Origin: Stegostoma tigrinum
Taxonomy: Eukaryota
Reading direction: 5' to 3'
Assembly: GCF_030684315.1 (NCBI RefSeq)
Contig: NC_081396.1
Coordinates: forward strand, 9,539,628-9,603,627
Length of the DNA stretch: 64,000 bases
This document shows, piece after piece, positions 7,693 to 64,000 of this stretch; the first letter of the stretch is position 1, and each line of letters begins with the position of its first letter. A program made the position numbers and the translations under genes. Below the pieces are notes generated by a model that saw only the letters and a program-made list of their open reading frames with translations, ran no database searches and had not been told where the DNA came from.

Positions 7693-8305
7693 TCACTTTT
7701 CAAATATTTTAATAGACTTTATTGGATATTCGGTTGCAATTTTAATTCAGTTCTGAATTCAGCCTGGGTCGCCAGTGTAAATTTTTAAAAAATGGAAGAA
7801 GGAGCTTACTAGCCGAGCCATAAATCCAATTTCTTGGACGATAAGTGTAGAATAGCTGACTTTGGAACCTGGAGTACAGGTAATGTTTGCGAGTTGGGCA
7901 AATGGGATCCAAAATAAATAACAAATGTAATAGGATGATATTAGCTGAGATGGTGAAGAGTAAATCAATTAACTTTCACTGCTTCACCATCTCTGGGTCA
8001 TCTATATTCATACTGTTGCTCCGAGACCAGACATTCCTGTAAGATTTATCGATCATTAGAGTATGTTTGGCAATGAGCAGTAAAATCAGAATAAATGGAA
8101 GTAGAGGTGTTAAAATGAATGCAACTCAGTATGGCTCATGTAGGCGATGTATAAACAATTAGTTTTACGCTGCAGAACCAGGGTATGTTGTTAATCATGG
8201 AGGTAGCATCCTATTCAGAAAAATACAACAAGGCATTTTTTCCTGCACAGGCCAAAGTGAAGACGATTTCTATAATAAACGGACCCATCTTCGCAGTGCA
8301 ATTTC
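7693..8305 (-). pseudogene. GPR139-like GPCR pseudogene (TM4-TM7 half), inverted relative to genes A-C
   Basis: Minus strand encodes MINNIPWFCSVKLIVYTSP, ILTPLLPFILILLL, FMARLVSSF..IYTG and EFRTELK..EYP, colinear with 14650-15170 and 36660-37150 but with frameshifts and stops. The 5' part is lost at a repeat insertion (~8305). Confidence 0.85.
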
Positions 8306-8399
8306 GGATGAAGGGCCGAGTGTTGAAACGTCAGCTTTCCTGCTCCTCTGATGCTGCTTGGCCGGCTGTGATCATCCAGCTCTGTGCCTTGTTATCCCA

Positions 8400-8800
8400 C
8401 TTTTCTGTCAAGTGCTTTCACTCTCCTCTCGAATTCAGCTCTTTTGTCAATGTTTGAACCAAGGCTGCAATGAGATCAGGAGCCGAGCAGCCCTGACAGA
8501 GCCCAAACTGGGCGTCATTGAGCAGGGTGTTGCTGAGCAGGTACTGCTTGGATCGCACTGTTGATGAGATATTCCATTGCAGACGATCAACTGTAGACAG
8601 ATTGGCCAGTAATTGGTCAGATTGGATTTGTCCTGCTTATTGTGTACTGAACATCGCTGAGCAATTTTCCAAATTGTCGGTGAGATGCCGCTGTTGCGTC
8701 TGTACCTAACAGCTTGGCTCGAGGCGCAACAGATTCTGGAGCACAAGACCTTCATTACAATTAGTGGAATATTGTCAGGGTCCATAGATTTTGCCTCCAA
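8400..8800 (-). mobile_element. CR1/L2-clade LINE RT fragment
   Basis: Minus ORF KSMDPDNIPLIVMK...SGISPTIWKIAQRCSVHNKQDKSNLTNYWPICL, the typical pre-RT segment. Confidence 0.8.
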
Positions 8801-9049
8801 CCGTAACCTTCAAGCACTTTGCGCAACCTGAAGTTGAAGAAGGTGTTACATCAAGGTTGTTTCTTTGCACAACTGACTTTAGATGTTGCGCACTAGCGCC
8901 TTGTTGCAAACGAGTTTGCATGAGTTGTTGAGAAACAAATCACACTAAAATTCTGTTGATGGACAGATTCACAGGCGCATCAGCGTTATAGTAGGCGAGC
9001 CAGCCTGTTTCTGCATTCAACGTGAACAGCTGTTTGGTAACTCCAATAC

Positions 9050-9265
9050 ACTAGCAGAGGCTAGTTGTATTATTGCTGGACTATTAATTCAGAGACGCGG
9101 GTTCGGACACTGGAACTTGGTTTTTTTTAAAAGCAAGGCGAAAATTAAGAGTCTGACGATGACTGTAAATGCATTCTCGATTGTTGGCGAAAAAAAATCA
9201 TCTGATTCACGACTGTCCTTCAGGAACAGAAACGGCCATCCTTCCTCGATCTCGCCTACATCACT
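9050..9265 (+). mobile_element. SacSINE/DeuSINE-like SINE fragment
   Basis: Similar to 19445-19810 (tattattgctggactattaattcagagac, aaatcatctgattcac...gtccttcagga). Confidence 0.65.
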
Positions 9266-9789
9266 CAATAATATCTGGAAATCTGTCGATCTCGCCAGCA
9301 AAAATACACAATAATTGAGTTTCCACAGCTGGGGTAAATTCCATATGCAGTGGCAAAGCCTTAACATGAGATCTTTGGCGACATTAAGCTGCTGTCTGCC
9401 TGAACGAGATACAAATCAGAAGAGACTACTCATAACACTGCGTGATGAATTTTCGAGCAGGAAAAAGTATACTTTGCAGAAAACGGCTCATGTTTGAATG
9501 CTCACGTGGACTTGTCACAAAATATTTATGAAATTACAGACTGAAATTGACAAGAGAACAATGAAATTTAAAAGATTTTCCACAAGCATCAGTCCAGTAC
9601 TGCGTTCCAACATAAATGGTTTCAGAATAAAAAAAACATGCAATATATTTACATCTGTCCAAAAAAAAATGCAGTCAATGACTGAATAATCATTGTTCTT
9701 TGTCTGCTTCTAGAAACTTAAGGATTGCAATTTAGAAATTTGAAAAGGATACTGAAGAAAACATTTCACAAATCTTCAGCAGAAATAGT

Positions 9790-10170
9790 TCTGGTGTTTG
9801 ATGCTATGATGCAAAAACAAGGCTAACGTAATGTTGGCCTTCATAATAGATGGATAGCATACAAGCACAGAGATGTCTTTCTGGTTTTGTGCAGAGCCTT
9901 GGTGAGACCTTGGCTATGCACGGAGCGCAACGAATGTTTACCAGGCTGATTTTGGCAGGACTGACCTGCAAAGAGGAAGTGAGTTGGTTATAACTATACT
10001 TAATGGAGCTGAGAATATTAAGGGGGAATCATTTAGAAGCTTAGAGCATTCTCACAGGAGTGGGCAGGGTTAACACAGAAATGGCATTCTGCATGACCAG
10101 GGAGTGCAGAACCAGGGCAAGCTCGAAGAGCTGAATGATCTATTCCTGCTCCTATTTTCTCTGGTTCTAT
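9790..10170 (+). mobile_element. CR1-like LINE fragment, degenerate
   Basis: gccttggtgagacc, tttaccaggctgat and tcctgctcctattttctctggttctatg tail. Confidence 0.7.
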
Positions 10171-10520
10171 GGTGAGTGACCACTGGATGAGGGGGCCACA
10201 TCGTGCCTGCTCTGTGGTTACATGTACTGAGGCAGAATTTGGCTGCATTTTCCATGAAGGGATGATTTTCTAATCACGACCAGCAGTGAAAATCAATGCT
10301 TTGGTCTTATCTCAATCTCCAGGCAGTCACCGTTTCTACAATGAAATGTTAGTGGGACGGCTGTGGTTTCAGTGTACTTCACGATTAGACGGCAAAGGGA
10401 AATATTTCATCCATCAAAACATAAACATCAGCTGGCAACAGCTGCACACTTCTGTTTGTTACAAGCACACTTCAGTAAAATTTACCGAGTGAATGAACTC
10501 CACCGGAGCGTGGAGGGCGG

Positions 10521-10528
10521 TATAAATA
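10521..10528 (+). promoter_or_regulatory. TATA box of GPR139-like gene A
   Basis: TATAAATA 59 nt upstream of the ATG at 10580. Equivalent TATAAT (26105) and CATAAATA (63869) sit at the same distance before the paralogous ATGs. Confidence 0.6.
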
Positions 10529-10579
10529 TCACCAATTTTACACTGAAATTCTGAACGGAGATCAGACTGTCTGATAGAA

Positions 10580-10649
10580 ATGCACGTAGCACTAGAAGGT
10601 TTGCTGTTGGCCATTTACGACCACGTCATTGCAGCTATCGGAGTTCCTG
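10580..10649 (+). CDS. GPR139-like GPCR gene A, coding exon 1
   Basis: ATG...MHVALEGLLLAIYDHVIAAIGVP+G, 70 nt, followed by donor GTAAGT (phase 1). Same length and phase as the exons at 26162 and 63925. Confidence 0.85.
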
Positions 10650-11399
10650 GTAAGTTACTGTGCCTAGTTCGTGACTGCTCGAATGATGGGTAAACTGCAG
10701 CCAATGAGACATTTCATTAGAACCGCTTCTGCACGTTTCAGGTACCCAGTCTCCGATTCAACATCTCCTCATTAGTGCCCCCCCCCCCCCGCCACCCCCC
10801 CACCCCCGACTTACCAACATACTGGATTTTGTTTAGGTGCGTTTTTTTTACCATCAAACTTTCATGCCTTCGGTACTACAACCTCATAATCTCTCCCACT
10901 TCTAGCATTTTGACAAAATTTGGAGGGATTAATCCGTAATTTCTCCCAAGTTATTATGTTTGCTTCAAAATCTAAATCCCAAGGTTTCATCATATTGCAC
11001 CTGTAATTTGACAATTAGCAGTATTCTGTCTCCCGAGACGTGAACAATTTCATTGTTCCAATTCGATGATTCTACAGTTTAGACCTCAGCAGATAAATGT
11101 AGTAGAGATGCACCAAAGGCCCGCTTCCTGTGTGAATCGGCACAATGTTACCATGGCGTCAAATCAGTTCTGTTCTGGCATTGACTATGTTCTTATGGGT
11201 AAATTAATGAAAACTTTACTGTTGTGCAAAATGGTTCTGAGTGGACACTGAAATTTGAGTACTCACATCACTTTGCGAATTACGCCTTCCATGAGTCGCT
11301 TCAACTGTGAATAAGTTGTCCTATTCTTCACAGAGTGCAATTGCAGATTTGTTGTGGCACTGCCAACTGCAGGAGAAGAAACACCATGAATTAAATTGA

Positions 11400-11563
11400 T
11401 AAACTGCTGATGCTGGAGTGAGAGTTATCACAGTGTGGAGCTGGAGGAACACAGCAGGCCAGGCAGCATCAGAAGAGCAGGAATCACAGCCCAAAACATC
11501 AGCTTTCTTGCTCCTCTGCTGCTGCCTGGCCTGCTGGGTTCCTCCAGCTCCACACTGTGTTAT
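11400..11563. mobile_element. Inverted dimer of Penelope-derived short element with 14-bp TSD
   Basis: Arms cacagtgtggagctggaggaacacagcaggccaggcagca / tgctgcctggcctgctgggttcctccagctccacactgtg. ATGAATTAAATTGA at 11386-11399 and 11562-11575. Confidence 0.85.
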
Positions 11564-11714
11564 GAATTAAATTGAGATATGTTGACCATAGAATAATGTC
11601 TGACTGACTTTAAGTCAAGCAAATGTTAAAAGAGACAGTATATGACACCGAGATAATGGCCAAATCTATTTTTTAATCAGCCTGCTTGTCCGCACTTGAT
11701 TGCATTTCAGTCCA

Positions 11715-12010
11715 GTGATTCAGTGGTTAGCACTGCTGCCTCACAGTGCCAGGGACCCAGGTTCAATTCCAACCTCAGTTGTCCGTCTGCGTGCAGTTTG
11801 TACGTTCTCCATCTGTCTGCGTCTGTTTGCTCTGGCTTCCTCCCACAGCCCAAAGATGTACAGGTTAGGTGTCCATAAAATTTTCCATATTGATCAGGGT
11901 GGTGTAGATTAGATGGGTTATAGGGGAATGTGTCTTGCAGAATGTTCTAGGGGTCGTGTGGACTTGCTGACCCAAGGAGCCTGTTTCCACACTGCAGGCG
12001 TTCTTTGATT
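11715..12010 (+). mobile_element. HE1-like SINE
   Basis: cagtggttagcactgctgcctcacagtgccagggacccaggttcaattcc ... gcctgtttccacactg. Confidence 0.85.
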
Positions 12011-12097
12011 TCTGTGCCCACCTTATCTTGAGACGGAACTTGAATCCAACCTTTCCCACCCAAGATAACGAAACAACCACTGCAAGAAAGACCTCAA

Positions 12098-12293
12098 TTG
12101 CCAGACGCTCAAAACAACATAATGCACCAAGAGGATGGCAATGCTTTCCGTAGGAATCGTGATGAAATTAAGCAGCATTTTTTAAAAATGTGTATTTTAC
12201 AATATGATCCGAGGTTTGTGGTAAAAAATATACCCTGGTTCTGTAACTTAAAAGATATATTTTTCACGTCATTTGCACGGGCTGCACATGATT
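12098..12293 (+). pseudogene. Partial copy of gene A exon 2 (TM4-ECL2) inside gene A intron
   Basis: Colinear with 14543-14739 (ttgccagacgctcaaaa...aaaatataccctggttctgtaac.taaaagatatatttttcacgtca), with TGT>TAA stop and an indel. Confidence 0.9.
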
Positions 12294-12489
12294 CCGACAG
12301 AAGCATTGTCATCGTTATGTTTTGATGCATCACTGGTTATGTACCAGGGTTTCTGTTCCCAGAATCTATTACTCAAGCCTTAAGCGTGGTTCTCCACAAT
12401 TCCATTCGCTGTTGATAAAGGTTCTTTAATGACTGATTTCTGTTTTTTTCCTTTCTCTCGCCACCCAGAAATGCTTAGCCATCATCGAT

Positions 12490-13385
12490 ACGAATTTTGG
12501 TCACGTTATGGACAGTGTGGAGGGCTGTTCTAGGGCAAAAAGGGACATTGATAGGATGCGGAGCTGGACTGAGAAGTGGCAGATGGATTTTAACCCTGAA
12601 AAGTGTGAGGCAATTCATTTTGGAAGGACAAACTTGAAAACAGAATACAAGGTTAATGGAAAGATTCCTGGCAGTGTGGATGAGCAGGGAGATCTTGGGG
12701 TTCACGTTCACAGTTCCCTGAGTGCTGCCACACAGGTGGATAGAATTGTCAAGAAGGCGTATGGTGTGTTAGCTTTCATTGACAAAGGGATTGAGTTCAA
12801 TTGCCCTGAAGTTGTGCTCCAGATCTACGAAAGCCTGGTCCGGCCACATCTGGAGTATTGTGCCCAGTTCTGGTCACCTCATTACAGGAAAGATTTGGAA
12901 GCTTTGGAAAAGGTGCAAAGGAGGTTTACCAGGATGTTGACTGGAATGGAGGGAAGGTCGTGCGAGGAAAGGTTGAGACAGCTGGGGCTTTTCTCTTTAG
13001 AACAATGAAGGATAAGAGGCGACTTGGTAGATGTGTACAAAATGATCAGAGGTATAGATAGAATAGGCAGCAACAGACATTTTCCTCGGGTGGAGGTAGC
13101 TCGTACGAGGGGGCATAGTTTCAAAGTGAGTGGAGGGAGAAAAAGGGGAGACGTCAGAGCTAGGTTTTTTACTCAGAGAGTAGTAGGGGCGCAGAATGCA
13201 TTGCCGCAGAGGGTAATGGATTCGATCTCATTGGTGGCGTTTAACTGGCTATTGGATAGCCATATGCATGATAGAAGAAGGTAGGGGTGGAGGTTAGATA
13301 GACATTAGATTTAGGGTAAAATTTCGGCACAACAACTTGGGCCGAAGGGCCTGTACTGTGCAGTACTGTTCCATGTTCTATATTC
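12490..13385 (+). mobile_element. CR1/HER1-like LINE 3' portion
   Basis: ORF 12508-13008 WQMDFNPEKCEAIHFGR...[20 protein letters not shown], then 3' UTR with tgttccatgttcta tail. Confidence 0.95.
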
Positions 13386-14118
13386 CATCTTCGTCACATT
13401 CTCCACATTGAGTTAAATCCTACAAATCGTAGCATTGCCCATAACTTCTGTCCACATACTGTTGCTTCCAATGTCCACTCAACAGTGAAGTTAATTGCTA
13501 ATCCAGACAGTGCAGCACCTCTCATTTGACTTCATTGCAAAAGCACTTTTCGCTGTCAGCACCTCGCCGTCTGCTGTTGTAGTCTGTCCACTCGACACCT
13601 ACCAATCCCAATTTATTGTTCGGTGCTGTGGCTCACATTTACAACTGAGCTCTACCTGACATGTCCTTACCAGCTCGAAGGTAAAAAGACATTGTCATTT
13701 TGCACTCATCTTGATCTGAATATTTTTTGAGCATCTTCACTGCTGAAATTTCCAATAATGAATCATTTTACAATAGTTTGGTGCATGCAATCACTTTGGA
13801 GGTGCAGCCGGACATATTCAATTTGCATGTTGATTTACTTGCTTATTGTCGGTTATCCTGTGTTTAGTTATTCGATACCTTTTTTTTGCAACGTTCTGCA
13901 ATGCTCCCAAGTCAGCTTTGTCTTCTTCGCTGTGAGAAGTCATTGATTTTGCATTATACTGACATTTACTTGGTGTACTTTCTCACCTGGAAGCCACTTT
14001 CTCATCTGGATCAGTAATTTTAGATAGCCTATGCATAATTTACACTTGAGTTTTACGACATGAAACCTTCAAATTCACAAGGATTCCATTAAATAAAAGT
14101 GACTTCTTTTGGGGGCAA

Positions 14119-14284
14119 NNNNNNNNNNNNNNNNNNNNNNNNNNNNNNNNNNNNNNNNNNNNNNNNNNNNNNNNNNNNNNNNNNNNNNNNNNNNNNNNNN
14201 NNNNNNNNNNNNNNNNNNNNNNNNNNNNNNNNNNNNNNNNNNNNNNNNNNNNNNNNNNNNNNNNNNNNNNNNNNNNNNNNNNNN
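14119..14284. other. Assembly gap (166 N) hiding gene A splice acceptor and ~10 coding nt
   Basis: Run of N. The reading frame resumes as VIVIQSPKRCG, matching gene B exon 2 just after its acceptor. Confidence 0.95.
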
Positions 14285-15200
14285 CGTTATTGTGATCCAG
14301 TCTCCAAAAAGGTGCGGTATTTCAGAATTTATCTCTTATTACCTAGTGTCAATGGAGGTGTCAGATCTGCTGGTCATTGTGACAGCTGTCATATTAAACC
14401 GCATTGCTGGGATTTACTTCCCGTCTAGTTTTCTCTCCCTCACACCAGTGTGCATTGTGCGTTCTGCGTTAAATTATGGATTTATTGATAGCTCTGCCTG
14501 GATAACAGTCGCTTTCACTGTTGATCGATTTGTAGCCATTTCTTGCCAGACGCTCAAAATAACATGTTGCACCAAGAGGACGGAAATGCGTTCTGTAGGA
14601 ATCGTGATCACATTAGGCTGTGTAAAAAATATATTTGTGTATTTTACATATGAACCAAGGTACGTGGTAGAAAATATACCCTGGTTCTGTAACCTAAAAG
14701 ATATATTTTTCACGTCAGTTGCATGGGCTGCTTATGACTGGGTTTGTTCAATTGTTCAATTTGTTCAATCCACTTGTCTCCCATTCATTCTGATTTTACT
14801 GCTCAATGCTCTGACCGTCAGGTACATTCTAGTGGCTAATAGAGCCCGCAGGAGACTCCGGACCCAGAACAATGGAAAGTATCAGAGTGATGCAGAGATG
14901 GAGAAGCGGAGAAAGTCAATCATTTTGCTATCTGCTATTTCAGGCAGTTTCATTCTGTTCAATGCACTCTACTTCATAACAATCCTGTACGTCCGCATCG
15001 GGAATCTTACTTATGCCTCGGATTCCGACTTTAACAATCTCTCTTTTGTTCTCAATGAAAATGCATTTATGCATCAGTTTTTGAGTTCCTGCGTCAACAC
15101 ATTTATATATGCTGGAACTCTGAATAAGTTCAGAGCCGAGTTAAAGAACGGGGTAGAGTATCCATGGAGACTTTTTCCTCAACTTAAATTCAAGTTTTGA
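14285..15200 (+). CDS. GPR139-like GPCR gene A, coding exon 2 (open, but possibly decaying)
   Basis: 304 visible codons: TM2 VSDLL, TM3 FTVDRFVAI, ECL2 PWFC, TM5 CLPFILILLLNALTV, TM6 KSIILLSAISGSFIL, TM7 SSCVNTFIY, stop at 15198-15200. Confidence 0.88.
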
Positions 15201-15269
15201 AAGCAGGAAGGAGAGAGATAACATAGTGCTATTCTCAATACACTCGTAATCCAGCATTTCAGCCTAATA

Positions 15270-15405
15270 TTAAGAAACAGGCCCTTTGACCCAACAAGTC
15301 CACACCGACCCTCAGAGTTTCTCACCCAGACCTATTCCTCTATAACCCACCTAATCTACACATCTGAACACCATGGGCAATTCAGCATAGGCGATCCACC
15401 TGGCG
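15270..15405 (-). mobile_element. HE1-like SINE 3' fragment
   Basis: gaaacaggccctttgacccaacaagtccacaccgacc...gggcaattcagcatagg. Confidence 0.75.
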
Positions 15406-15666: not shown

Positions 15667-15866
15667 AGAGATAACAAGGTGTGGAGCTGGATGAACACAG
15701 CAGGCCAAGCAGCATCGTAGGAGCAGGAAGGCTGACGTTTCGTGCCAAGACACTTCATCGGAAAATCTGATTTTCTGAAAATGGGTCTAGGCCCGAAACA
15801 TCAGCTTTCCTGCTCCTCTGATGCTGCTCGGCCTGCTGTGTTCATCCAGCTCTGCACCTTGCTGTC
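15667..15866. mobile_element. Inverted dimer of hammerhead-bearing Penelope-derived element
   Basis: ~95-nt arms ataacaaggtgtggagctggatgaacacagcaggcc... / ...ggcctgctgtgttcatccagctctgcaccttg, with two degenerate hammerhead cores back to back at the centre. Confidence 0.85.
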
Positions 15867-15939
15867 TGTGAATGTATGTTGCCTGTTTATGCCGAAATGT
15901 GAGTGCGCATCTCGTTACTTTGTCAGTGCGCTTGACACA

Positions 15940-22880: not shown

Positions 22881-24000
22881 AGAACATAGAACATAGAACA
22901 AGGAAAAGTACAGCGCAGTCTAGGCCCTTCGGTCACGATGTTGTGCCGTTGAATAATCCTCATCCAAAAATAAAATAACCTAACCTACATTCCCCTCAAT
23001 TCATTGCTGTCCATGTGCATATCCAGCAGTCGCTAAAATGTCACTAATGACTCTGCTTCCACGGCTACCACTGGTAAACTATTCCATGCGCTCACAACTC
23101 TCTGGGTGAAGAACCTCCCTCTGACATCTCCTCTATACCTTCCTTCTAACATGTTAAAACTATGACCCCTCGTGGCAGTCAATCCTGCCCTGGGGAAAAG
23201 TCTCTGACTATCGACTCTATCCATGCCTCTCATTACCTTGTGCACCTCGATCAGGTCACCTCTCTTCCTGCTTCTCTCCAGAGAGTAAAGTCCGAGCTCA
23301 GTCAACCTCTCCACGTAAGACAAGCCCTCCAGTCCAGGCAGCATCCTGGTAAACCTCCGTTGCACCCTCTCCAAAGCCTCCACATCTTTCTGAGAATAGG
23401 GCGACCTATATTCCTATGGACACAATATTCCAAGTGTGGTCTCACCAGGGTTTTGTAGAGCTGCAGCATAACCTCGCGGCTCTTAAACTCGACCCCCCTG
23501 TTAATGAAAGCCAAAACACCATCTGCTTTCTTAACAACCTTATCCACCTGGGTGGCAACTTTGAGGGAGCTATGCACTTGAACACCAAGATCCCGCTGTT
23601 CCTCCACACTGCCGAGAATCCTGCCTTTAATCCTATATTCAGCATTTAAGTTTGAGCTTCGAAATGCATCACTTCGCATTTATCCAGGTTGAATTCCATC
23701 TGCCATTTCTCAGCCCAGCTCTGCATTCTGTCAATGTCTCGCTGAAGCCCTCGATACTATCAACTGCACCTCCAACCTTTGTGTCATCAACAAACATACT
23801 AACCCACCTCTCAGCCTCCTCAGCCAAGTCATTTATAAAAACTACGAAGAGCAGAGGCCCAAGAACAGAGCCCTGCGGGACACCACTCAGCACTGACCTC
23901 CAGGCAAAATACTTACCATCTACAACCACTCTCTGCCTCCTGTCAGCCAATCAATTCTGAATCCAGACAGCCAAATCACCCTGTATCCCATACCTCCTGA
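22881..24000 (-). mobile_element. Relatively young CR1/HER1 LINE, 5'-truncated (~1.1 kb)
   Basis: Minus ORFs RQRVVVDGKYFAWRSVLSGVPQGSVLGPLLFVVFINDL...[17 protein letters not shown] and MEALERVQRRFTRMLPGL. (agaacat)n tail at 22881-22900. Confidence 0.95.
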
Positions 24001-25216: not shown

Positions 25217-25530
25217 TTAGATTAAATTCCCTACAGTGTGGAAACAGGCCCTTCGGCCCAACAAGTCCACACTGACCTCGAAACATCCCACAAAGAGCCC
25301 TCCCCCGCAACCCACACACCGCTGAACTCTACAGATAATTTAAACATGGCCAATCCACCGAGCCTGCACATCATTGGACTGTGGGAGGAAACCAGAGCAC
25401 CCGGAGGAAACCCACGCAGACAGAGGGAGAATGTGCAAACTCCACACACACCGCCACCTGACGCTGGAATCGAACCCGGATCCCTGGTGCTGTGAGGCTG
25501 CAGTGCTAACCACTGAGCCACCATGCTGTG
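25217..25530 (-). mobile_element. HE1-like SINE, full length
   Basis: ttagattaaattccctacagtgtggaaacaggcccttcggccc ... ggaatcgaacc (B box) ... ctaaccactgagcca (A box). Confidence 0.9.
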
Positions 25531-25780: not shown

Positions 25781-25992
25781 GAGATCACAAGGTGTTGACC
25801 TGAATGAACACAGCAGGCCACACAGCATCAGAGGAGCTGGAAGGCAGATATTTCTGGCCAAGACATGACCCTAGAACTGGTCTAGGACCGAAACATCAGC
25901 CTTCCTGCTCCTCTAATGCTGCTTGGCCTGCTGTGTTCATCCAAATCTACACGTTGTTGTCTCGCATTCTCCAGCATCTGCAGTTCCGACTA
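25781..25992. mobile_element. Inverted dimer of Penelope-derived element in gene B promoter
   Basis: atgaacacagcaggcca...gcatcagaggagc / gctcctctaatgctgcttggcctgctgtgttcat. Possible short TSD tgaagaaa at 25771-25778 and 25997-26004. Confidence 0.8.
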
Positions 25993-26161
25993 AACCTGAA
26001 GAAATATTCAATTCACATAAGGTGGGACAAATTATTGTGTCAAAATGAAGTTAATTAATGCCAAAACTCAAGCGAACTATATATCTCTCTGGAGGATAAC
26101 GTGGTATAATTGCCACTGTTTTTCAGCAAATTTCAAAACGTGCTTGGCGCTCACGACAGAA

Positions 26162-26231
26162 ATGCATGCTCGGCTAACAGGTCTGTCATTTGCCATTTAT
26201 TATCCCATCACTGCTGCTATAGGGATTCCAG
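26162..26231 (+). CDS. GPR139-like GPCR gene B, coding exon 1
   Basis: MHARLTGLSFAIYYPITAAIGIP+G, 70 nt, donor GTAAAG. Joins in phase 1 to 36274, giving ...GIPANLAVIVILS. Confidence 0.9.
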
Positions 26232-26889: not shown

Positions 26890-28900
26890 GCTGCACTATT
26901 GTCCGGTGGTACAAAACCCTGGACAAGAGAGGACCTCTGAGGACTTTGTGCTAGTCTGGGATACCATTGCTGACATGAAGACAGGGGGTGGGTGGACGGC
27001 TGCCTCATGAACCTGGATCTGGAGGAGGCCTTTGACAGGATATGCACACCTGCATGCAGGTGTGCTCTCCAATATGGGATTGGGGGAGAGATTCCAACCT
27101 GGATCCAACTCTTTTATGCCAACATCGTGATTGCAATCTCAATCAATGGTGGGAATCAGAAAGCCTCCCCATCTCATCTGGAAACAGGCGATGCTTTTTT
27201 GTGTGTGTTGTACTGAACCTTTCACTGAACCCATCAGGAAGGATGCCCACCCCAGAAGGGTGACTGTTCCAGGGCAGCTGGAGGTGTGCTAATTATTGCC
27301 GCACTGTGCATGGATGGTTTTGCTGTTTCTTGCTGGGACACCGTTGTCAGTGTGCAGGCTCCTGAATAGCTCCAACCATCCCCTTCACCATCAGAGCACA
27401 TTGCCTGAAGGTGCTAGGATTAGGGGCTAGGGCGCGCACAAAAATGTGGGAGGAGCAGTAACTGGGCTTATAGCAGCATCGCTCTCTCTCCATTGCAGAA
27501 AAAAACCTGGTGTGAGGTACTCTCAGGGTTGCTGCATATGGCATAATTCTGGCCCATTCCCTGACCCTATGACTTTGCATTCACCCAAGCAATCTTCCAC
27601 TTCATCCGGAGGTCTTCTTCAGGGGCACCATGTACAAAGCTCTGGATAAGGGGGGTGTGAAAGACACAACCAATGCCACCCTCATCCTGATTGCCACCTT
27701 TGTACATGGCTGTATTAACCTCTATGTAGACCCTCAGCACAAACACAAACTGTCAGCACACACTGGATTTCTACTGGTTCCCTTGTGCGGTGAGGGATGG
27801 GTCTGGCCCCATTCTTGCAGAATGCTGCAAACAGTAAGACTTTTCTATGTCACTGGTCCCTCCCTCCTGGTGAAATTTTCAAAGGAAAATACTTTTGACC
27901 ATTAGACCATCAGGAAGTTGTAAGCATGTAGTGTTCTCAAAATATTGTGGGGAAAGGAGAGGTTGGATCCTCTTATGTGATTCCCTTATCAGACTGTCAA
28001 AGTCTTTTGACGGAATGCCCCCTTGCAAAAACTTTCCAACAAACACCAAGATACTGTTTGGCTGGTGGTGAGAAGGACATTACCTGTCAAATCCTTCATG
28101 GATGCCTGAACTCTCTGGGCAACTGCACACTGCCATCAATGGAGCTGTGGATGCGGATGAGGCTGGTGGTAGTGAAAGAGGTTTTTACACACGTCCTTCT
28201 GCAATGTGCCTTTGCAAAGAAGGCCTGGACGGAGATTAGATTCCCTACAGTGTGGAAACAGGCCCTTAGGCCCAACAAGTCCACACCGCCCCTTGCAGCA
28301 TCCCCCCTAGACCCTTCCGCCTACAACCCACACACCCCTAAACACTATTCACAATTTAGCATGGCCAATCCACCTAGCCTGCACATCTTTGGACTTTGGG
28401 AGGAAACCAGAGCACCCGAAGGAAACCCATGCAGACACGGGGAGAATGTGCAAACTCCACACAGACAGTCACCCGAAGCTGGAATCGAACCCAGATCCCT
28501 GCAACTGTGAGCCTCCAATGCAAACAACTGAGCCACCGTGCACCCTAGATGCATTAGTTTTTGTCAAGGTTCGTCCCAAGCAATTCCGTACCACAGGACT
28601 CTGTACTCAGCGGGCTGTTCCCCGTAACACAAACTGACACAAACATTAACTGTGCCTGGAGCATCGCCTCCTTGTTGAAAGAAATTCTTTGGCCTGCCGA
28701 TACCTGGTGGTCTTCCAGTGTAGAGCTGACCATGATTGAGTGTGGTATAATTGCATATTTCAAGGTCCAGGATGCCACACTGAGGGACGCCTTAAAGCTT
28801 GGAGCTACAGCCACCAAGGCAGAGTAGGGAAAAACTGTTGTCTGAGGTCTTTCTGCCAAAGTATAACGAGGTGCAGTACAGTTCCAAGACCCCTTCAATG
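26890..28900 (+). mobile_element. Degenerate L1/Tx1-clade LINE ORF2 3' half (in gene B intron)
   Basis: MNLDLEEAFDRI, WIQLFYANIVIAISINGG, and C-terminal HVLLQCAFAKKAW (CCHC-region motif). Many stops. Confidence 0.75.
28234..28545 (-). mobile_element. HE1-like SINE nested in the Tx1-like LINE
   Basis: gattagattccctacagtgtggaaacaggccc ... ggaatcgaaccc ... actgagccaccgtgc. Confidence 0.9.
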
Positions 28901-34900: not shown

Positions 34901-35927
34901 GCAACTCAAACAACGTTTGAAGATGGCTATGACTCCATTGAGAAGTGAAAGAAAACAATGAATTTTATGCTGTTGACAGAGGGGGAGGACGAGACAGTGG
35001 AAAAGGTGGAGGAGGATGCCGAAGCCAACAGGGGTATGAGTGACGGGAAAGGAGTGATTAAGATGTAAAATAAGTGTTGATTATATGTGTGAAAAAGAGA
35101 CAATGTGTCAGATCTGCTGACACATCTGATGTGTCAGAACAAACCCCCCAAGACACAAACAATGCAGGGTGGAGAGAGCAGAAATTGAAACCAAAATGGA
35201 AGACAGAATACGTGCTCTGAATCTGTTGAACCCAATACTGATTCCTGAAGGATACCCAAGCAGGACAAAACACATTGTTCCTCCAGCTCATTTGTACTCC
35301 GCTGGAACACTGTACCAGCTCTAGAATGGAAACATAGGCATCATATGAGGAAACAGATTGAATGATAAGCAATTGAAATATAGGTATCATTCTTAAAGAA
35401 AACACACATGTGTTTGACAAAACAGTCATGCAGTCTGCTATTGGTCTCACCAAAGTAAGGGAGACTGCAGTGTGAGAAGTGAAGATAATGTACCGGATTG
35501 AAAGAAGTGGAAATAATGTTATCTTCTGAGGGAGTTCGGGAGTAGGGGCCAAAGTTTTATAAAAATGCTGCGCTAAATTGGGACTGAGGCGGTTGAATTT
35601 GGGACTCTGTATCCACAAAGATGGTGGAAGCAGGATCACTTCTAATACTGAGTTAAATATATTTCTGTCTAGCAAGTGAACAAAATGTTATTTGGCACAC
35701 TGGAATATTGTATTGCACAAACAAAAAGATTCCCCGTAATCTATGTAAATGTCTGAGAAGTTTTAAACGGCAGACACCTTATTTCTGCTCCAATTTTGCA
35801 GTGATCATGTGCTTTGTTCGGTCTCATGAAAATATTTTTGAATCGTATGTCTTTGACCTCAACCTGAACGGTGGTGTTGAATTCAGGAAATTGGTACCCA
35901 CAGACAGACACAATGATTTCCAAAGAT

Positions 35928-36273: not shown

Positions 36274-37199
36274 CTAACCTGGCAGTAATTGTGATCCTGT
36301 CTCAAAGAAGATGTGGTCTCTCTGGATGTGTTACTTATTACCTGGTGTCCATAGCAGTGGCAGATCTACTGGTTATGCTCATGACTGTAATATTAAACCG
36401 GATTGCTGGCATTTATTTCCCATCCAGCTTCCTGTCTATCACACCTGTGTGTAGTATCCGTAATGCATTAAATATCGCAGCCACTGACAGTTCTGCATGG
36501 TTAACAGTGGTTTTCACCTTTGACCGATTTGTCGCCGTTTCTTGGCCAAACCTGAAAGCAAAATATTGTACCAGGAAGGTGGCAGCGTGGCTTATAGGAA
36601 TTGTGTGTGCATTGACCTGCCTAAAAAATATCTTTAGGTGTTTTCAATTTGAGCCAAAGTACATAATTAATGGTACACCCTGGTTTTGTGACATAAAATC
36701 CGTATATTATACTTCACCAGCATGGACTGCATATGACTGGATTCGATCCATTTTAAACCCCTGTCTGCCATTCATTTTGATTTTCCTCCTTAATGCTCTA
36801 ACTGTCAGACACATCCTAGTGGCAAATAGAATGCGGAGGAGATTTCGGAATCAGGGAAAAGAAAAGAACCAGAGGGACCCAGAAGTGGAGAAGCGTAAAA
36901 AGTCCATTATTTTACTCTTTGCTATCTCGGGTAGTTTCATCCTGTTGAATTTATTGTATTTTGTAACAATCCTTTATGTCCGAATTGCCAATGTTACTTA
37001 TTCCTCAGGTTCTGATGCCAATAATTCCACATTCGTTCTCCAACAGAGTGGACTTATGCTTCTGGTGCTGAGCTCTTGCATCAACCCATTTATTTACGCT
37101 GGGACACAACATAAATTCAGGGTCGCGTTAAAGAACATGATTAACTATCCAAAGAACCTATTGTTTAATATAGTAAAATTGGAAAACAGGAACATCTGA
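36274..37199 (+). CDS. GPR139-like GPCR gene B, coding exon 2 (intact; spliced product 331 aa)
   Basis: Polypyrimidine tract plus ttacAG acceptor at 36272-36273. Seven-TM pattern with AVADLL, FTFDRFVAV, PWFC, NPCLPFILIFLLNALTV, KSIILLFAISGSFIL, SSCINPFIY. Confidence 0.93.
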
Positions 37200-37209
37200 C
37201 ATGCACATA

Positions 37210-38102
37210 AGATAGTAAAGGGGACTGTCGGAGTATGCAGCAGAATATAGATAGATTCGAGAGTTGGGTGGAGAAATAGCAGATGGAGTTCAATCCAGGC
37301 AAATGTGAGGTGAAGCATTTTGGAAGATCCAATTCAAGAGCGAACTACACAGTAAATGCAAAAGCCCTGGGGAAAATTGATGCACAGAGAGTTCGGGGTC
37401 TTCAGGTCCATTATACCCCGAAGGTGACAACGCAGGTCAATAGAATGGCTAAGAATGCATATGGCATGTTTTCATTCATCGGACGGGGTATCGAGTACAA
37501 GAGTTAGCAGGTCATGTTCCAGTTGCATACGACTTTGGCTCGACCACATTTGAAACACTGCATACAACTCTGGTCACCACATTACCAAAAGGATGTGGAT
37601 GTTTTGGAGAAAGTGCAGAGGAGGTTCAAAAGGATGTTGCCTGGTATGGAGATCGCTATCTATGAAGAGAGGTTGAGTAGATTAGGATTATTCACATTCG
37701 AAAGACAAAGGTTGAGGGGGGACCTGATTGAGGTCTACAAACTCATGAGAGGTATAGACATGGTGGATCGAAAGAAGCACTTTCCTAGAATGGGGAATTC
37801 AATTACTAGGGGACACGATTTCAAGGTGAGAGGGGGAAAGTTTAAGGGACGTATGCCTGTAAAGTTCTTTATGCAGAGCGTGGTGGGTGCCTGGAACACG
37901 TTGCCAGAGGAGGTGGTAGAGGCGGAAAAGATAACATCATTTAAGATGCATCTAGACCGAAACATGAATGTGCAGGGAGCAGAGGGATACAGATCCTTGG
38001 AAAATAAGCGACGGGTTTCGATGGAGGGTTTGGATTGGTGCAGGCTTGGAGGGCCAAAGAGCCTGTTCCTGTGCTGTAATTTTCTTTGCTCTTTGTTCTT
38101 TG
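37210..38102 (+). mobile_element. CR1/HER1 LINE 3' portion starting ~10 nt after the gene B stop codon
   Basis: ORFs MEFNPGKCEVKHFGRSN and LARPHLKHCIQLWSPHYQKD. (tctttgt)n tail. Confidence 0.95.
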
Positions 38103-39189
38103 TATGAACTATTTTTTTTACCTATTTCATGGGTAATTCCATTTGAAATCTGCACATACTAAGGGAATTTAAGTATATATGCCAGAACCGCTGTAAATTT
38201 CGGTCTTGTCTACCGCTCGCAGTCAGTTTTCTGCTCTCTTTCCTGTGCTCATTCAGTCTTTGCACGTTCGCAATTCCAATTTGTCCTTCTCCGGCCAGAT
38301 TTTGGCTTGTACTCAACTCCTGGTTTCACGACTCCATTAAGAATATTTGATCACACAAAACTATTTCAAGCATTGCTTAATGCTCACACACATTGCACTG
38401 AAATGTCTGCCTCTGCAGCTGACTGAAGGTTCCAGAGTCATGACACCAGTATGCAAGATGAGGATGACTGAGTGTTGTCCCACTGTCTTCTTGCACATGA
38501 GTGGCTGTATGTATTACTGCCTCTGCTGCTCCAGAGGGTCAACGCTATTAGCTAACTAACAGCCGTGTACATGTTGTTTCACACAGAGACCCCACAAACT
38601 ATCCCTTACTGCGAGATTTCCTGTGGAACAGATCTAAGTTGGAGAAAAAGTTTTCTACAGTTCATTGTCAAGAATTGTTCAGCAGATTCATGCAAAACCA
38701 CAAGTTACAACAGCCTGAAAACCCCACTTCAGACATAGGGGTCTATTACAGAATCGCATGCCACTGAAAACCACTACAACTTCGACCCACACAATTTATC
38801 ACATCGCTGCTTGTGCAATGTCTTCTCTTAAGGTCACTTCAACTAGAGACAACTTTCTGCATAAAGTAACATTTACAGAGAATACACAAATGACCTATGC
38901 AGCCAATGTCAGGAATCAATGCTGTGAGCTTGAACATGACATAAGCACTGCAGTGAAACAAAATGTTGATGTGCAATCATCCTTTTCAAAACACACCAAT
39001 TAAATCACTGCGGCTCTTGTCAATCTCACAAGGCAATGTATGCCGGATCTACCCCAGTAAAAAAGAAACAACTGATGTATGGCAAATCTAAACAAGGGGC
39101 GATGTGGACTTGTTGGTCTGAAGGGCCTGTTTCCACAGTGTCGGCGTTCTAATTCTAATTCTAAAATTTCTAATCACTTTCATGTTGTA

Positions 39190-56057: not shown

Positions 56058-56179
56058 AACTGCCCCTTTCTTCCAGATTCTTCCTGGCCTGCTGTGTTCT
56101 TCCAGCCTCCTGTTTATCTAACTTTACTGGAAACTTCGGACTTGAATTCTACCTGGATTTCCCTCAACATTAAATACAA

Positions 56180-57849: not shown

Positions 57850-58290
57850 AAAGCGAGGACAATCAGGATTGTTTTCATTGCAGTTCAGACAAATGAGAAG
57901 GGGTTTGACAGAGGCATATAAAATTCCAACACGATTGGACAGGGTAGATGCAGGGAGGATGTTCCCGATGGTGGGCATGTCCAGTACCAGGGGTCACAGC
58001 CTGAGGATTCGGGGTAGACGATTCAGGATGAAGATGAGGAACTTTTCTTCACCCAAAGCGCGGTGAGCCTGTGGAATTCATTATCACAGGAAATAGTTGA
58101 CGCCATAGCATTGAATGTATTCAAGAGGCGACGAGATATAGCAATTGGGGTGAATGGGATCAAAGGCTATGGAGAGAAAACAGGAATGGGCTATTGAGTT
58201 GATCGATCAGTGATGATGGTGAAGGATGGCAGAACAGGCTGCAAGGACAGAAGGGCCTCATCCTGCTACTATCTTCTCTGTTTTCATGTT
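57850..58290 (+). mobile_element. CR1 3' fragment
   Basis: ORF GLFSLQFRQMRRGLTEAYKIPTRLDRVDAGRMFPMVGMSSTRGHSL. Confidence 0.9.
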
Positions 58291-59539: not shown

Positions 59540-59800
59540 ATGATTTGAATTATGTTTTGGAAAGTCGGAAATTAAAAGTCGAATGATAACCATGAATCCA
59601 TTATCGATTATCTGACATTCCCATCTGGTTCCGTAATGTCCGTTAGGGAAGCTAACTGGCATCGTTTCCTGGTCTGGAATATATGAGACTCCAGACTCAG
59701 AGCAATGTGGTTGACTCTGAAGTTCCCTCTGGTGAATTAAGGATGGACAACACATGCTGGCCCATTCAGCGACACACTCAACTTGTGAATATTGTTTTTA
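59540..59800 (+). mobile_element. SacSINE/DeuSINE-like SINE fragment directly upstream of the V segment
   Basis: ccatgaatccattatcgatt, cccatctggttc, gactccagactcagagcaatgtggttgactct. Confidence 0.7.
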
Positions 59801-60053
59801 AATTGCCAGTTGGCCACATTTATAAGATCATTATTCTCTGCCTTTTGGCAAAGTTGTATCTCAGCTAAGAAAACATACATCTCAGGATATTGCAGAGTGG
59901 GTGTGAGCTGCAAATCAACTGTGAATGAATTAAATTTGGAGCTGGTGTGGGAAGCTGGAAGTTGCAAACACTCTCCTGTATTTCTGGGATATAAATGGAA
60001 AATGACACGAGTTTCATTTTCACTTTATCTGCCAGTCACATTGTATCTTACAG

Positions 60054-60326
60054 GTGAAGAGGTAGTTTTGCAATCATTCCCATCTCAGACTCCAAGTGAA
60101 TGGAGACCGTATCAATACACTGTCACGCAACCATCTCATTCTCTGCAGTATACTGGTGCATGCAAACTCCGAATCACTGCCCAAAGTTATTGGTAACGGT
60201 GACGGGAAGTGAAGCGGTGAATAATTGCAGATTTAGAGCTGTCAGTAGAAGTGAAGAGAAAAGCAGCTCTCTGATAATATCGACCTTACATCTAACAGAC
60301 ACCGGAAGCAACTTTTGTGCCCTACT
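60054..60326 (+). pseudogene. T-cell receptor V-alpha/delta-like gene segment, frameshifted
   Basis: Acceptor cttacAG 60052-53. Repairing a 1-nt deletion near 60101 gives EEVVLQSFPSQTPSE(G)ETVSIHCHATISFSAVYWCMQTPNHCPKLLV...RFRAVSRSEEKSSSLIISTLHLTDTGSNFCAL: IgV Cys/Trp/Cys framework with a CAL end typical of TCR alpha/delta V. Confidence 0.88.
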
Positions 60327-60365
60327 CACAGTGTGGAAAGGAGCGTCAGAGTCCGTACAAAAACC
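60327..60365 (+). promoter_or_regulatory. V(D)J recombination signal sequence, 23-bp spacer
   Basis: CACAGTG (60327-60333) + 23 nt + ACAAAAACC (60357-60365), exact consensus, abutting the V 3' end. Confidence 0.97.
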
Positions 60366-60520
60366 TAGTCTGCTGTGAGTATTCTGTGTTTTGAGTAAAA
60401 TAACAGAAGAAATCTAGTCGAACTTGGGACATGGATAATGGAGGTAGGGTGATATTCCGTCAAGACGAAACGTTATATCGATCCCGCTGCAAATTGAAAA
60501 TGGGCTATGTACGGAATATG

Positions 60521-60700
60521 TGAAGCTGCATGAACACAATGGGCCAAGCAGAATCAGAGGAGCAGAAAAGTTGACTTTTTGGGTCGAGACCCTTCTTCAG
60601 TCAACGTTCCGGCTCCTCTGATGCTGCTTGGCCCACTGTTTTCATCCAGCTCCACAAGGTGGTATCTCACATTCACCAGCATTGACAGTTCTTACTGTTT
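60521..60700. mobile_element. Inverted dimer of hammerhead-bearing element
   Basis: gggccaagcagaatcagaggagc / gctcctctgatgctgcttggccc arms, joined at ccttcttcag|tcaac. Confidence 0.8.
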
Positions 60701-61041
60701 CTATTATCGCCAGTTCATGACTGGATCATCTGTGCGTACGCCAAATCATCAACAGTTAAGTGGTGTTGTTCACAACAACCTGCATTTGGGGCCTTATGTT
60801 TAATTGGATTTTTAAATGATGCAGGAAAACTGCTCGAAGCAGGAAAGAGCATTTCAGCTGCATCAATTGTACTCAGTGGCCATGCTCAACCTTGTATTCT
60901 CTCTGGGGATTTTCCTGGAGAAATTATGCCCTGAATTTGGGAGCACTGTTGTGCAATTAAATAGGTAAAATGGCTCAATTCGTGTGAGTTTACAGCTTTT
61001 GGTTCAGTCAGTTGACCATGCATTTATTGAGATTTTTAAAT

Positions 61042-61340
61042 AGAACATAGAACAGCACAGCATTGGAACAAACCCGCCGGCCCACAATATTGTGCCAAAC
61101 ATGACGACAAATTAAACTGAACACTTCTGCCTGCCCTCTGTCCATGCCCCTCCATACCTTGCATTTTCATGTGCTTATGTGAAAAACCATAAATGTCCTT
61201 TCATATCTGCCGCCAACACTGCCCCTGGCATGGGTTTTCAGACTGCCACTACTCCCTGTATTTAAAAAAAGACTTCTCTCTCACATCTCCTTTCAACTTT
61301 CACCCTTCATCTTCAATGCATGGCCTTAGTTTTAGAATAA
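61042..61340 (-). mobile_element. CR1 3' fragment
   Basis: tagaacatagaacagcacagc tail followed by the CR1 3' UTR on the minus strand. Confidence 0.75.
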
Positions 61341-61429
61341 TAATGGGCAACATTTAATGAAATGAAAGATAACAAGGTGTAGAGCTGGATGAACACAGCA
61401 GGCCAAGCAGCATCAGAGGAGCAGGAAGG

Positions 61430-61459
61430 CTGACGTTTCGGACCTAGACCCTTCTTCAG
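61430..61459 (-). ncRNA. Best-preserved minimal type I hammerhead core, within short element 61365-61462
   Basis: CUGAAGA-A-GGGUCUAGGUCC-GAAA-CGUC-AG: all conserved core nucleotides, palindromic ACGU stem III, GUC cleavage triplet. Confidence 0.7.
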
Positions 61460-62454
61460 AAATTCAAGTTTGGATAGGGCCCATGCAGAGTAACTGGTTC
61501 TTTGATACGGCAATGCAAAACAATAGGTAGGACAATTAGGTCATTCAAGCATTGACTTTCTTTGGAAAGAAGAATTGTGAACATCTTGAATTATTTCACC
61601 AGCAAAGATTGTGATGGTATATAATAACATCACTTGTCAATGTCAATATCAGCAGACACTTTTCGTTTGTAACTTTGCAGGGTATTACTAATGGTTAGAA
61701 TGTAAGCATATGTATCACGATCAAGTCCATGAACTCATTTTCAAATTTCAAACCATCAGACCACTTACAGGTCGTTTGGAAAGAGTTACAGCCTCCCATT
61801 GCTCACAACTGAATGAGAAATCCTCCCCATTTTATTCTGCAAAGTGCAATTTGGTTGCGCCATGAAGAGGAGCAGCAGTGCATTTGGGAGTTCTTACATT
61901 GCACAAGATGTGAAGTCATGCTATCAACTGCTGTTGAGTTGAGATTCTGATGGAAATGCTTGGATGACACACAGCCAAAGGGGGTTTCCCTTTCTCTGAA
62001 ACGGTCATGATGCTTTGTAACATTTCTGAATTAGATGTTTAAAGCAGGGTACTCGAATATGTTAAGGAGAGAGAGACACATATTCTTGATACGGTTATGT
62101 CGAGATTAATTAGGATTGAAGAGAATGTGAATAATCAGACCATCCATTATAGACGAAATTATGGAGAAGGCTTGACCAGCCGGCTGGCGAGCTTCTGCTC
62201 TAATTGGGATTTCTGTCTGCACAAATGACAGCAGCCGCATTGAACTGAACTAAAAATCCTGTTGAGAGTCATCCTACTAAATCGAATCCTGTCAACTTGA
62301 AAAATGCGCAAGTCAGACCGGACAAGTACACAGGCGTTTAGCTGCTCTGTGATAGATTGATCATCGCTGAATGTGCTTGTTCTGAACTGATTAAAACCAC
62401 ACTGAATGTAATTGACCCGAACTGCGCGTTAAAAACTTAGTGGACATTACCGAA

Positions 62455-62771
62455 GGCCAGGAAGCATCAGAGAGGGGCATGAAAAATGACGTTTTGGGAA
62501 GGGGTCCTTGCCCGAAACGTCAGCTTCCCTGTTCCTCTGATGCTGCCTGGCCTGCTGTGTTCATCCACACTGTGTTACCTCCAGCACCGCCCATCATTCC
62601 CGCACAATGCTTGGAGGAGCAGGAAATTTGACATCTTCAGAAATTCAGAAAAAAGTGTCCCGACACAAAACCTCAACTTCCTTGCTCCTCTGATGCTGCC
62701 TGTTCCTGTGCATTCCACCAGCTCCCCACTGTGCTATCTCTCAGTCCAGTATCGGCAGTTCTTGCTGTCTC
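62455..62771. mobile_element. Compound inverted array of hammerhead-bearing elements
   Basis: Alternating-orientation arms. Flanked by tggacattaccgaa 62441-62454 and tgaacattactgaa 62772-62785. Confidence 0.7.
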
Positions 62772-63390
62772 TGAACATTACTGAACTTGCATTTCCCTCT
62801 GTAGGTGTAACTGTCCTGAATATCTAAGTTAACAGCGACATCAGATTTCTGGATCGAATTTATCCACACCGAAAGTAACCAAAGTCGGGCTCAATGTCGC
62901 TGATGCATGAAAGTGCTATGAACTGGACCCGGATTTGGCAACACAGTACATACCGCGATTAAACAGGCCCTGACTATGGATTTAGCCATGCTGAAGCCTA
63001 GAGGGGTCAAGTGTATCGAAATGTGTGGGGCTAATCTTATCTTGGAATAAACACACGGAATATTTCTCCCCGAAAGTGTGCCAGTTTATTTTTGTTTCCC
63101 CTGCATGTACAGATGTTAAACATAACATTTTGACACCGAATACAACTGTTCTACGCTGGACCTCTTCACGCACTGGTCTCAAAATGGCAACGAGCTGACT
63201 GAGGTACTTGGGAAGAAATGGACCCGAGCACAACTAAGATGACAAAGCTTCACTGCAATGTCCACACGGAATATAATTGATCGGACTTCACGATTTGAAC
63301 CTGTTTCAAATCACCTCCCATATGGGTAATGATCATCTTGAACGAATAATGGCCGTGATGCGGTGGTGCAGTGTGGACTGAGCGTGGACA

Positions 63391-63574
63391 AGGTCAGAAG
63401 TCACATGACACCAGGTTGCCATCCAACAGGTTCATTTGAAATCGCAAGCTTTCGTCAGCGCTACTACTTCTTTGGATCGACACACTCCACCGGACAAAGG
63501 AGCAGCGCTTGGAAAGCTTGTGTTTTGAAATAAACTTGTTGGACTATAACCTGGTGTCGTGTGACATCTTGACC
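63391..63574. mobile_element. Inverted dimer of a further Penelope terminal-repeat family, upstream of gene C
   Basis: gtcacatgacaccaggtt...ccaacaggttcatttgaaatc / ttttgaaataaacttgttgga...aacctggtgtcgtgtgac. Degenerate hammerhead ggagcagcgcttggaaagctt at ~63499-63519. Confidence 0.75.
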
Positions 63575-63924
63575 CTGACCGAATATTGATATAGAGTGAC
63601 AAGGTTGCCTGCATTTTCTGTGGGGAGAAAAGAATCAGAGGTAAACTTTGGCCTGAACGAATACCCATAGTTCTTTTTTTTATAAAATAGAGAAATATGA
63701 CTGGGATCATTCTTCAGTCTGTGTGTATTTCAAAACAGCCAGGTGAAACGTGTTATTTTTGACAAAATACAAACCTCATCTGAGCAACAGCTGAAATACT
63801 GTTTGCTACAACCAAATTAATGTACAACATTGAAAAAAGTAATTATCTCCCTGGAGCACAGAACCACACATAAATATTATCTTCTTTCAGTGAAATGCAG
63901 AGCCGATCAGAGTTTCTAATAGAG

Positions 63925-63994
63925 ATGCACGCAATACTGACAGGTCCACTGTTTAATGTTTATTATCCTGTCCTTGCAGCAGTCGGAGTTCCTG
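63925..63994 (+). CDS. GPR139-like GPCR gene C, coding exon 1 (exon 2 beyond window)
   Basis: MHAILTGPLFNVYYPVLAAVGVP+G, 70 nt, donor GTAAAT. CATAAATA 56 nt upstream. Confidence 0.88.
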
Positions 63995-64000
63995 GTAAAT

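Follow-up and report, generated by a model that had tools for sequence, protein, structure and literature searches.

Genes for G-protein coupled receptors (GPCRs) of class A can reside within an antigen-receptor locus, as is the case of the olfactory-receptor genes that human, mouse and sheep have interspersed among their TRAV genes (PMC4574546). An arrangement that may resemble it, made of another receptor family, was found in the zebra shark Stegostoma tigrinum, in a stretch of 64,000 nucleotides of contig NC_081396.1 (positions 9,539,628 to 9,603,627 of the forward strand, assembly GCF_030684315.1), which was analysed as a whole and is referred to as the window. The preferred reading, to which a probability of about 0.7 is assigned, is that this piece of an array is a tandem same-strand cluster of shark-expanded, two-exon class-A receptor genes, with a dead variable (V) segment of antigen-receptor type, still bearing its recombination signal sequence (RSS), between two of the units.

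Although sharks are known for their keen smell, canonical olfactory receptor genes are very few in them (PMC10869828; PMC11979771). In cartilaginous fishes these genes number 20-62, according to a survey that makes no mention of the family described here (PMC10869828), and a paucity of GPCRs in this group was reported in the whale-shark genome paper (PMC8455134). A literature search returned no paper linking GPR139-like genes with sharks, and in databases the shark family appears only under a misleading automatic name, mostly that of GPR139. For the activation of the latter receptor, the residues F109 (3x33), H187 (5x43), W241 (6x48) and N271 (7x38) were found to be highly important by mutagenesis (PMC5430874).

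Receptor genes in the window

The receptor pieces (Table 1) were located by tblastn with five database proteins of the family and by a six-frame motif scan of the window, and sequence searches were made exon by exon (exon 1 or exon 2). By tblastn and motif scan, exactly three copies of exon 1 occur in the 64 kb, all on the plus strand, and they define the units named genes A, B and C. The initial annotation described three same-strand genes with identical 70-nt, phase-1 first exons; strand, length and phase were confirmed, whereas the sequences themselves are not identical, sharing 63-69% of their nucleotides in pairwise comparison. Common to the three is the peptide pattern MH..L.G....[IV]Y.....A.[GIV]G[IV]P. 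Exon 1 codes for the start methionine, an N-terminus of about 7 residues and the first half of transmembrane helix 1 (TM1), and exon 2 for the rest of the receptor.

In gene B, a polypyrimidine tract and CAG precede exon 2 at 36274, and the two exons (70 + 926 nt) give a reading frame of 332 codons, stop included, which continues in frame across the junction. The intron measures 10,042 nt in gene B and about 3.6 kb in gene A, the second value being an estimate across an assembly gap; both introns are in phase 1 and are packed with interspersed repeats. The gap conceals the acceptor of gene A together with some 10 coding nt of its exon 2, as deduced from the register of the family alignment, where exon 2 opens with ..ANLAVIVILS and the readable sequence of gene A starts at ..VIVIQS; no likeness to a receptor is seen in the DNA left of the gap. 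The readable part of this exon retains every invariant column of a 28-sequence alignment (A1, in which gene A is itself one row). An open reading frame (ORF) at 14109-15200 was rejected as the product of gene A, being an artefact that translates through the run of N. Exon 2 of gene C lies beyond the end of the window.

One inverted pseudogene and one exon fragment had also been annotated, and both were recovered as relics of the family. The inverted copy, which spans only the region from about residue 120-150 to the C-terminus, qualifies as an old pseudogene because it is scattered over three frames and has 32-50% identity to the family. The fragment in the intron of gene A is 83% identical in nucleotides to gene A exon 2 at 14543-14737 and is regarded as a dead local duplicate on account of an indel and a scrambled stretch. 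Altogether, the window holds two genes that are probably intact, a lone first exon, two relics and a dead V.

A class-A receptor family expanded in sharks

Genes A and B pass the Pfam 7tm_1 profile (cut-off 30.5 bits; values in Table 1). In the 28-sequence alignment, D25 (Asp 2.50), D78-R79 of the DRF motif (Arg 3.50), N265 of the NPFIY motif of TM7 and the cysteine pair C54 and C133, which corresponds to TM3 and extracellular loop 2 (ECL2), are invariant, and P266 and Y269 of the NPFIY motif are nearly so. An AlphaFold model was used for P0001, a full-length database member from Stegostoma that is 72-73% identical to gene B and is not one of the window genes. It displays seven helices, helix 8 and an ECL2 hairpin, with a predicted local distance difference test (pLDDT) value of 83.8, and in a Foldseek search with this model peptide-type class-A receptors rank at the top. 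TM6 (gene B codons at about 36920-36990) is devoid of proline, yet it was modelled as one long helix.

With gene B as query, 1,252 database proteins were retrieved at E <= 1e-10, and the best 120 listed all belong to sharks, from at least 12 species that include the genera Stegostoma, Rhincodon, Chiloscyllium, Hemiscyllium, Heterodontus, Scyliorhinus, Mustelus, Carcharodon, Heptranchias and Pristiophorus. A phmmer search against 1.84 billion cluster representatives yielded 99 clusters (50% identity level) at E <= 1e-30. Heterodontus alone contributes 71 of the best 120 matches, and dozens per shark species occur among the matches listed. These genes are concentrated in the genome: 52 of the 71 listed Heterodontus matches reside on one 59.5-Mb chromosome (Heterodontus francisci) and 14 of the 18 listed Rhincodon matches on one 11.7-Mb scaffold.

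Over exon 2, the proteins of genes A and B share 61% identity and their DNA 71%, and no likeness extends past the exon. Synonymous divergence (dS) between them is 0.75-0.93 and the ratio of nonsynonymous to synonymous divergence (dN/dS) is 0.29-0.39. In the tree, gene A pairs with the Chiloscyllium punctatum gene P0017 (79-80% identity, support 100) and not with gene B, which groups with Stegostoma and Rhincodon genes; from this pairing, another shark carries a closer counterpart of gene A, at the least, and the two neighbours are old paralogues under purifying selection. The Heterodontus copies fall into a few species-specific clades, their 71 rows requiring only 5 label changes whereas shuffled rows need about 39. 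Given these clades, the old paralogy of A and B and the two relics in the window, the family evolves by birth and death, leaving old paralogues, partial duplicates and decayed copies. The earlier description of a birth-and-death expanded GPCR family is thus borne out by the intact-looking copies, the partial duplicate, the decayed inverted copy, the more than 1,250 relatives and the Heterodontus bursts.

Motifs such as DRF and NPFIY hardly vary across 122 sequences, and column entropy is highest in ECL1, upper TM3, ECL2, the top of TM5, TM6, ECL3 and the top of TM7. The column aligned to position 5.43 (TM5) holds 13-14 residue types, the one aligned to 6.51 (TM6) is also highly variable, and several of the most variable columns align with class-A ligand-pocket positions. 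This pattern of variability suggests that the members of the family may differ in what they bind.

The V segment between genes B and C

A T-cell receptor (TCR) V-like segment with an RSS had been proposed between genes B and C. A V-set core followed directly by an exact 23-RSS does occur at that place; the segment is disrupted by a frameshift and a TGA. The translation of the core (60103-60326, 74 codons) matches Pfam V-set and reads ...ETVSIHC...VYWC...LHLTDTGSNFCAL, which contains the landmarks Cys23 (IHC), Trp41 (YWC) and, at the end of the core, Cys104 (NFCAL). The signal CACAGTG-N23-ACAAAAACC is the sole exact match in the window, and 0 of 100 shuffles produced one. Such a 23-RSS is compatible with alpha, delta, beta, gamma, VH and lambda V segments.

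Framework region 1 (GEEVVLQSFPSQTPSE, 60054-60100, after ...cttacag) sits in a different frame from the Cys23-Trp41-Cys104 core, whose own frame is interrupted by the TGA at 60097-60099, before Cys23. Short-read contigs were available from four runs of one DNA-like sample, which may be the assembled individual. One contig of 301 nt from this independent data set (59977-60277) reads identically across the frame break, and neither insertions nor deletions were recorded for the stretch; the V is considered a pseudogene with a consensus RSS because the break is present in the short reads of that sample as well. Four positions within the final 40 nt of the V (60284-60322; C>G, G>C, A>T and C>T) differ in another set of contigs, whose depth is about half and which corresponds either to the other allele or to a paralogous V at least 95% alike.

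When the V was compared with the PDB, the best matches were TCR alpha and immunoglobulin light-chain V domains, and the TCR chains among the 60 best were all alpha; an Atlas feature search returned TRBV and IGKV clusters. A word-indexed protein search with the V translation gave no match, which reflects a limit of the method and is not evidence. A second V, a joining (J)-like segment with a signal and a constant (C) domain were sought in the 64-kb window and none was found. The further search for V, J and RSS in the window gave chance-level results only, namely a double match at 35172-35276 with E 0.45 and relaxed RSS matches at the frequency expected from shuffles.

Table 1. Coordinates of receptor-gene, V-segment and associated features in the window.
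Feature	Position	Strand	Remarks
Inverted decayed receptor pseudogene	7699..8309	-	tblastn high-scoring segment pairs 8309-8142, 8071-7940 and 7929-7699; three frames
TATA box, gene A	10521..10528	+	59 nt before ATG, in conserved promoter block
Gene A exon 1	10580..10649	+	70 nt, phase 1, ATG start, GTAAGT donor
Partial exon-2 duplicate	12093..12310	+	tblastn in two frames; inside gene A intron; about 220 nt
Assembly gap (N run)	14119..14284	.	adjoins first readable base of gene A exon 2
Gene A exon 2, readable part	14285..15200	+	open to TGA 15198-15200; Pfam 7tm_1 7.8e-13
TATA-like box, gene B	26105..26111	+	57 nt before ATG
Gene B exon 1	26162..26231	+	70 nt, phase 1, ATG start, GTAAAG donor
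Gene B exon 2	36274..37199	+	926 nt including TGA; Pfam 7tm_1 5.6e-24
Antigen-receptor V exon, pseudogene	60054..60326	+	Pfam V-set 6.8e-7; framework region 1 out of frame with core
23-RSS (CACAGTG, 23-nt spacer, ACAAAAACC)	60327..60365	+	exact consensus, directly after V
TATA-like box, gene C	63870..63877	+	55 nt before ATG
Gene C exon 1	63925..63994	+	70 nt, phase 1, ATG start, GTAAAT donor

Co-residence of V and receptor genes

The V and the receptor genes would occupy a common duplication-prone region, putatively the V part of an antigen-receptor locus, with no functional coupling implied. Most likely, what the window samples is an uncharacterised sensor family that resides in such a region and is not functionally coupled to the V.

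A closer association, in which a V and a receptor gene form one duplication unit that was amplified together and possibly is under common regulation, is considered doubtful. The V is co-oriented with the receptor genes and lies 3,559 nt before exon 1 of gene C (and 22.9 kb after gene B), which speaks for such a unit; the variant contigs at the 3' end of the V and just upstream of gene C exon 1 could likewise reflect a paralogous block at least 95% alike, but they are equally explicable as alleles. Within the window, the co-duplication of GPCR and V cassettes put forward in the initial annotation finds no support: a single V accompanies three gene units, a V relic was sought upstream of genes A and B and was not found, and common flanks are missing. 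The DNA likeness between units stops at exon 2 and a promoter block of at most about 250 bp, the other repeated DNA of the window consisting of interspersed repeats. Moreover, the divergence of A and B is old, and closer kin of both genes exist in other species. Finally, family members also adjoin unrelated genes, as deduced from over-long family gene models of other sharks that are fused with hemopexin, sodium-channel and integrin domains (Pfam, ten models); a V-set domain was looked for in the same ten models and none was found.

The opposite possibility, that the V is a lone orphon in a receptor cluster unrelated to any antigen-receptor locus, agrees with the presence within 64 kb of one V only, dead and with no J or C, but a perfect consensus RSS is unexpected in a long-abandoned orphon, and this explanation is held to be quite improbable.

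Under the preferred reading of a receptor array that shares its region with an antigen-receptor V, receptor genes woven through the V array would, if confirmed as such, bear on the growth of the locus by block duplication and on genes that are somatically deleted in T cells. Should V segments and their J-C flank the array, T cells that rearrange an upstream V by deletion would lose the receptor genes, which would argue against a role of the receptors in such cells.

Relation to GPR139 and other receptors

The designation of these genes as GPR139-like holds in the sense of a nearest named receptor and fails as a statement of orthology. A profile of the family against the PDB gave TRHR (2.2e-13), GPR139 (3.9e-13, 52.5 bits) and PrRPR (9e-12), so GPR139 is tied-nearest and level with TRHR; when gene B alone was compared with solved structures, NMUR2 was the best match (1e-6) and GPR139 was not among the 60 matches shown. 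In the Foldseek search with the P0001 model, GPR139 was nominally first at 21% identity, with NTSR1, GALR1, OX2R, GPR15 and CXCR3 essentially tied. In a HMMER alignment, F109 of GPR139 is matched in the family by Y (I in gene B), H187 by R (where the column varies strongly), W241 by Y (N in gene B) and N271 by F; all four are replaced, and by this alignment the aromatic amino-acid pocket of GPR139 is not conserved in the shark family. The automatic name given to most members is 'probable G-protein coupled receptor 139', but members of the same family were also named capa receptor-like, GPR15-like, TRHR-like and sex peptide receptor-like.

Distant kin with 25-36% identity were found in skate, coelacanth, salamanders, a teleost, amphioxus and a barnacle. 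A conserved 'GPR139-like' gene, present as one copy per species in the sample, occurs in catshark, zebra shark, sawshark, coelacanth, sturgeon, teleosts, amphibians and reptiles; its database members include P0220 (coelacanth), P0294 (catshark), P0295-P0297 and P0301. It scores 70 bits against the GPR139 structure 7VUG and is also called 'probable G-protein coupled receptor 139', and its sequence looks like that of an unnamed vertebrate receptor in its own right, distinct from GPR139. In a tree rooted on invertebrate sequences, which comprised neither authentic GPR139 nor GPR142, this conserved gene forms clade L (support 99), and its sister clade S (support 97) contains the shark expansion, one skate protein and two salamander proteins. 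Among the best 150 cluster representatives, of which 20 were looked up by name, no true vertebrate GPR139 was recognised, and the two vertebrate representatives tested against the PDB scored only 53-70 bits to GPR139.

That the window genes are ordinary GPR139 orthologues or recent duplicates that sense aromatic amino acids or peptides is refuted as orthology by the low identity, the replaced residues and the separate clade, in spite of the RefSeq automatic name, the nominal Foldseek rank and a TM1 motif in common (YY..L...G.PAN...IILS). Nor are they a few syntenic orthologues of GPR139, as shown by the number of relatives, above 1,250, and the clade of their own.

Possible function and weight of the evidence

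The family would represent a set of sensors with diversified ligand specificity. The most likely role would be chemosensory, and a role in immune cells ranks second. With dozens or more members per species, variability at columns aligned to the pocket and purifying selection, such a class-A family is an obvious candidate for an overlooked sensor repertoire. The yield of the window alone is modest. It is tempting but speculative, and on balance unlikely, that the family constitutes a true sensory repertoire, the missing chemoreceptors of sharks, and that its residence over megabases of V array would be an ancient counterpart of the olfactory receptors of the mammalian TRA/TRD locus.

Several points weigh against the preferred reading of the window. 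The CWxP motif of TM6 is missing throughout the family, which has tyrosine at 6.48 (asparagine in gene B) and leucine at 6.50, and the signalling competence of the family is assumed. Gene C is known from exon 1 alone, and gene A is interrupted by the assembly gap, which hides its frame and continuity. A search of sequencing runs with gene B identified the four runs mentioned above, all of one DNA-like sample, with no RNA run among them. With regard to an olfactory role, a catshark study speaks weakly against it, as no GPCR was among the 50 most olfactory-specific genes (PMC11979771).

Promoters, repeats and other features

Upstream of each exon 1 there is a conserved block (10330-10579, 26070-26161 and 63675-63924 for genes A, B and C, respectively), in which the TATA-type box is preceded by ...CTGGAG.... 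The promoters of genes A and C are alike over about 250 bp, including two CAGCTG motifs. In short-read contigs, T replaces C at 63869, by which CATAAATA would become TATAAATA at the gene C promoter, and the contigs near this gene also show G for A at 63911 and C for T at 63913; these variants could belong to an allele or to a near-identical paralogue.

An interspersed repeat of about 310 nt is present in 5 copies, in both orientations and 70-85% alike (4041-4351, 7198-7509, 11720-11998, 25217-25528 and 28233-28541). A retroelement-like ORF tail occurs in 3 copies with 66-71% DNA likeness (12508-13392, 22882-23738 on the minus strand, and 37247-38107), one of them within the intron of gene A and another immediately after the stop of gene B; it carries the motif ...HLEYC.QFWSPHY.KD...E.VQRRFTRMLPG... 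and has no Pfam match. Elements of about 200 nt that match themselves as reverse complement (72-83%) are located at 15669-15867, 25781-25963 and 63386-63580 and look like foldback repeats or repeats of the miniature inverted-repeat transposable element type; two of them precede the first exons of genes B and C by 200-550 nt. The segments 61364-61510 and 62393-62686 are extremely abundant repeats, with a summed contig word depth of tens of thousands to millions against about 5-20 in unique DNA. Pfam gave no match for 15 other long ORFs of the window, and an Rfam scan of the window gave none either.

Comparison with known systems

The conserved gene of clade L represents the nearest vertebrate clade identified, with about 34% identity to gene B and the same automatic name. 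It differs from the shark family in that it has one copy per species in the sample and a tree that roughly follows the species tree, whereas the shark family is placed in the sister clade S.

GPR139 (7VUG-7VUJ, 9M42) shares with the family the class-A fold, the TM1 motif, S.W.TV..T.DR in TM3 and N..xY in TM7. In contrast, the shark proteins are only about 21% identical to it, have the four activation residues replaced and lack W6.48 and P6.50; and while GPR139 is described as single-copy and conserved, the shark family has more than 1,250 relatives.

With the OR, TAAR, V1R and T2R chemoreceptors the family has in common large tandem arrays, birth-and-death evolution with pseudogenes, lineage-specific bursts and variable residues at aligned pocket positions. 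Unlike in those families, its coding region is split by an intron. It is not one of the six canonical families of chemoreceptors that were surveyed in cartilaginous fishes (PMC10869828).

In the mammalian TRA/TRD locus, unrelated class-A receptor genes are placed between rearranging V segments (PMC4574546), an arrangement that the shark region would share. The mammalian receptors are, however, two or three genes (OR10G2 and OR4E2; Olfr1507-1509) at one end of the locus, whereas in the shark three gene units and relics, from another receptor family, are gathered in 64 kb of a locus whose identity is putative.

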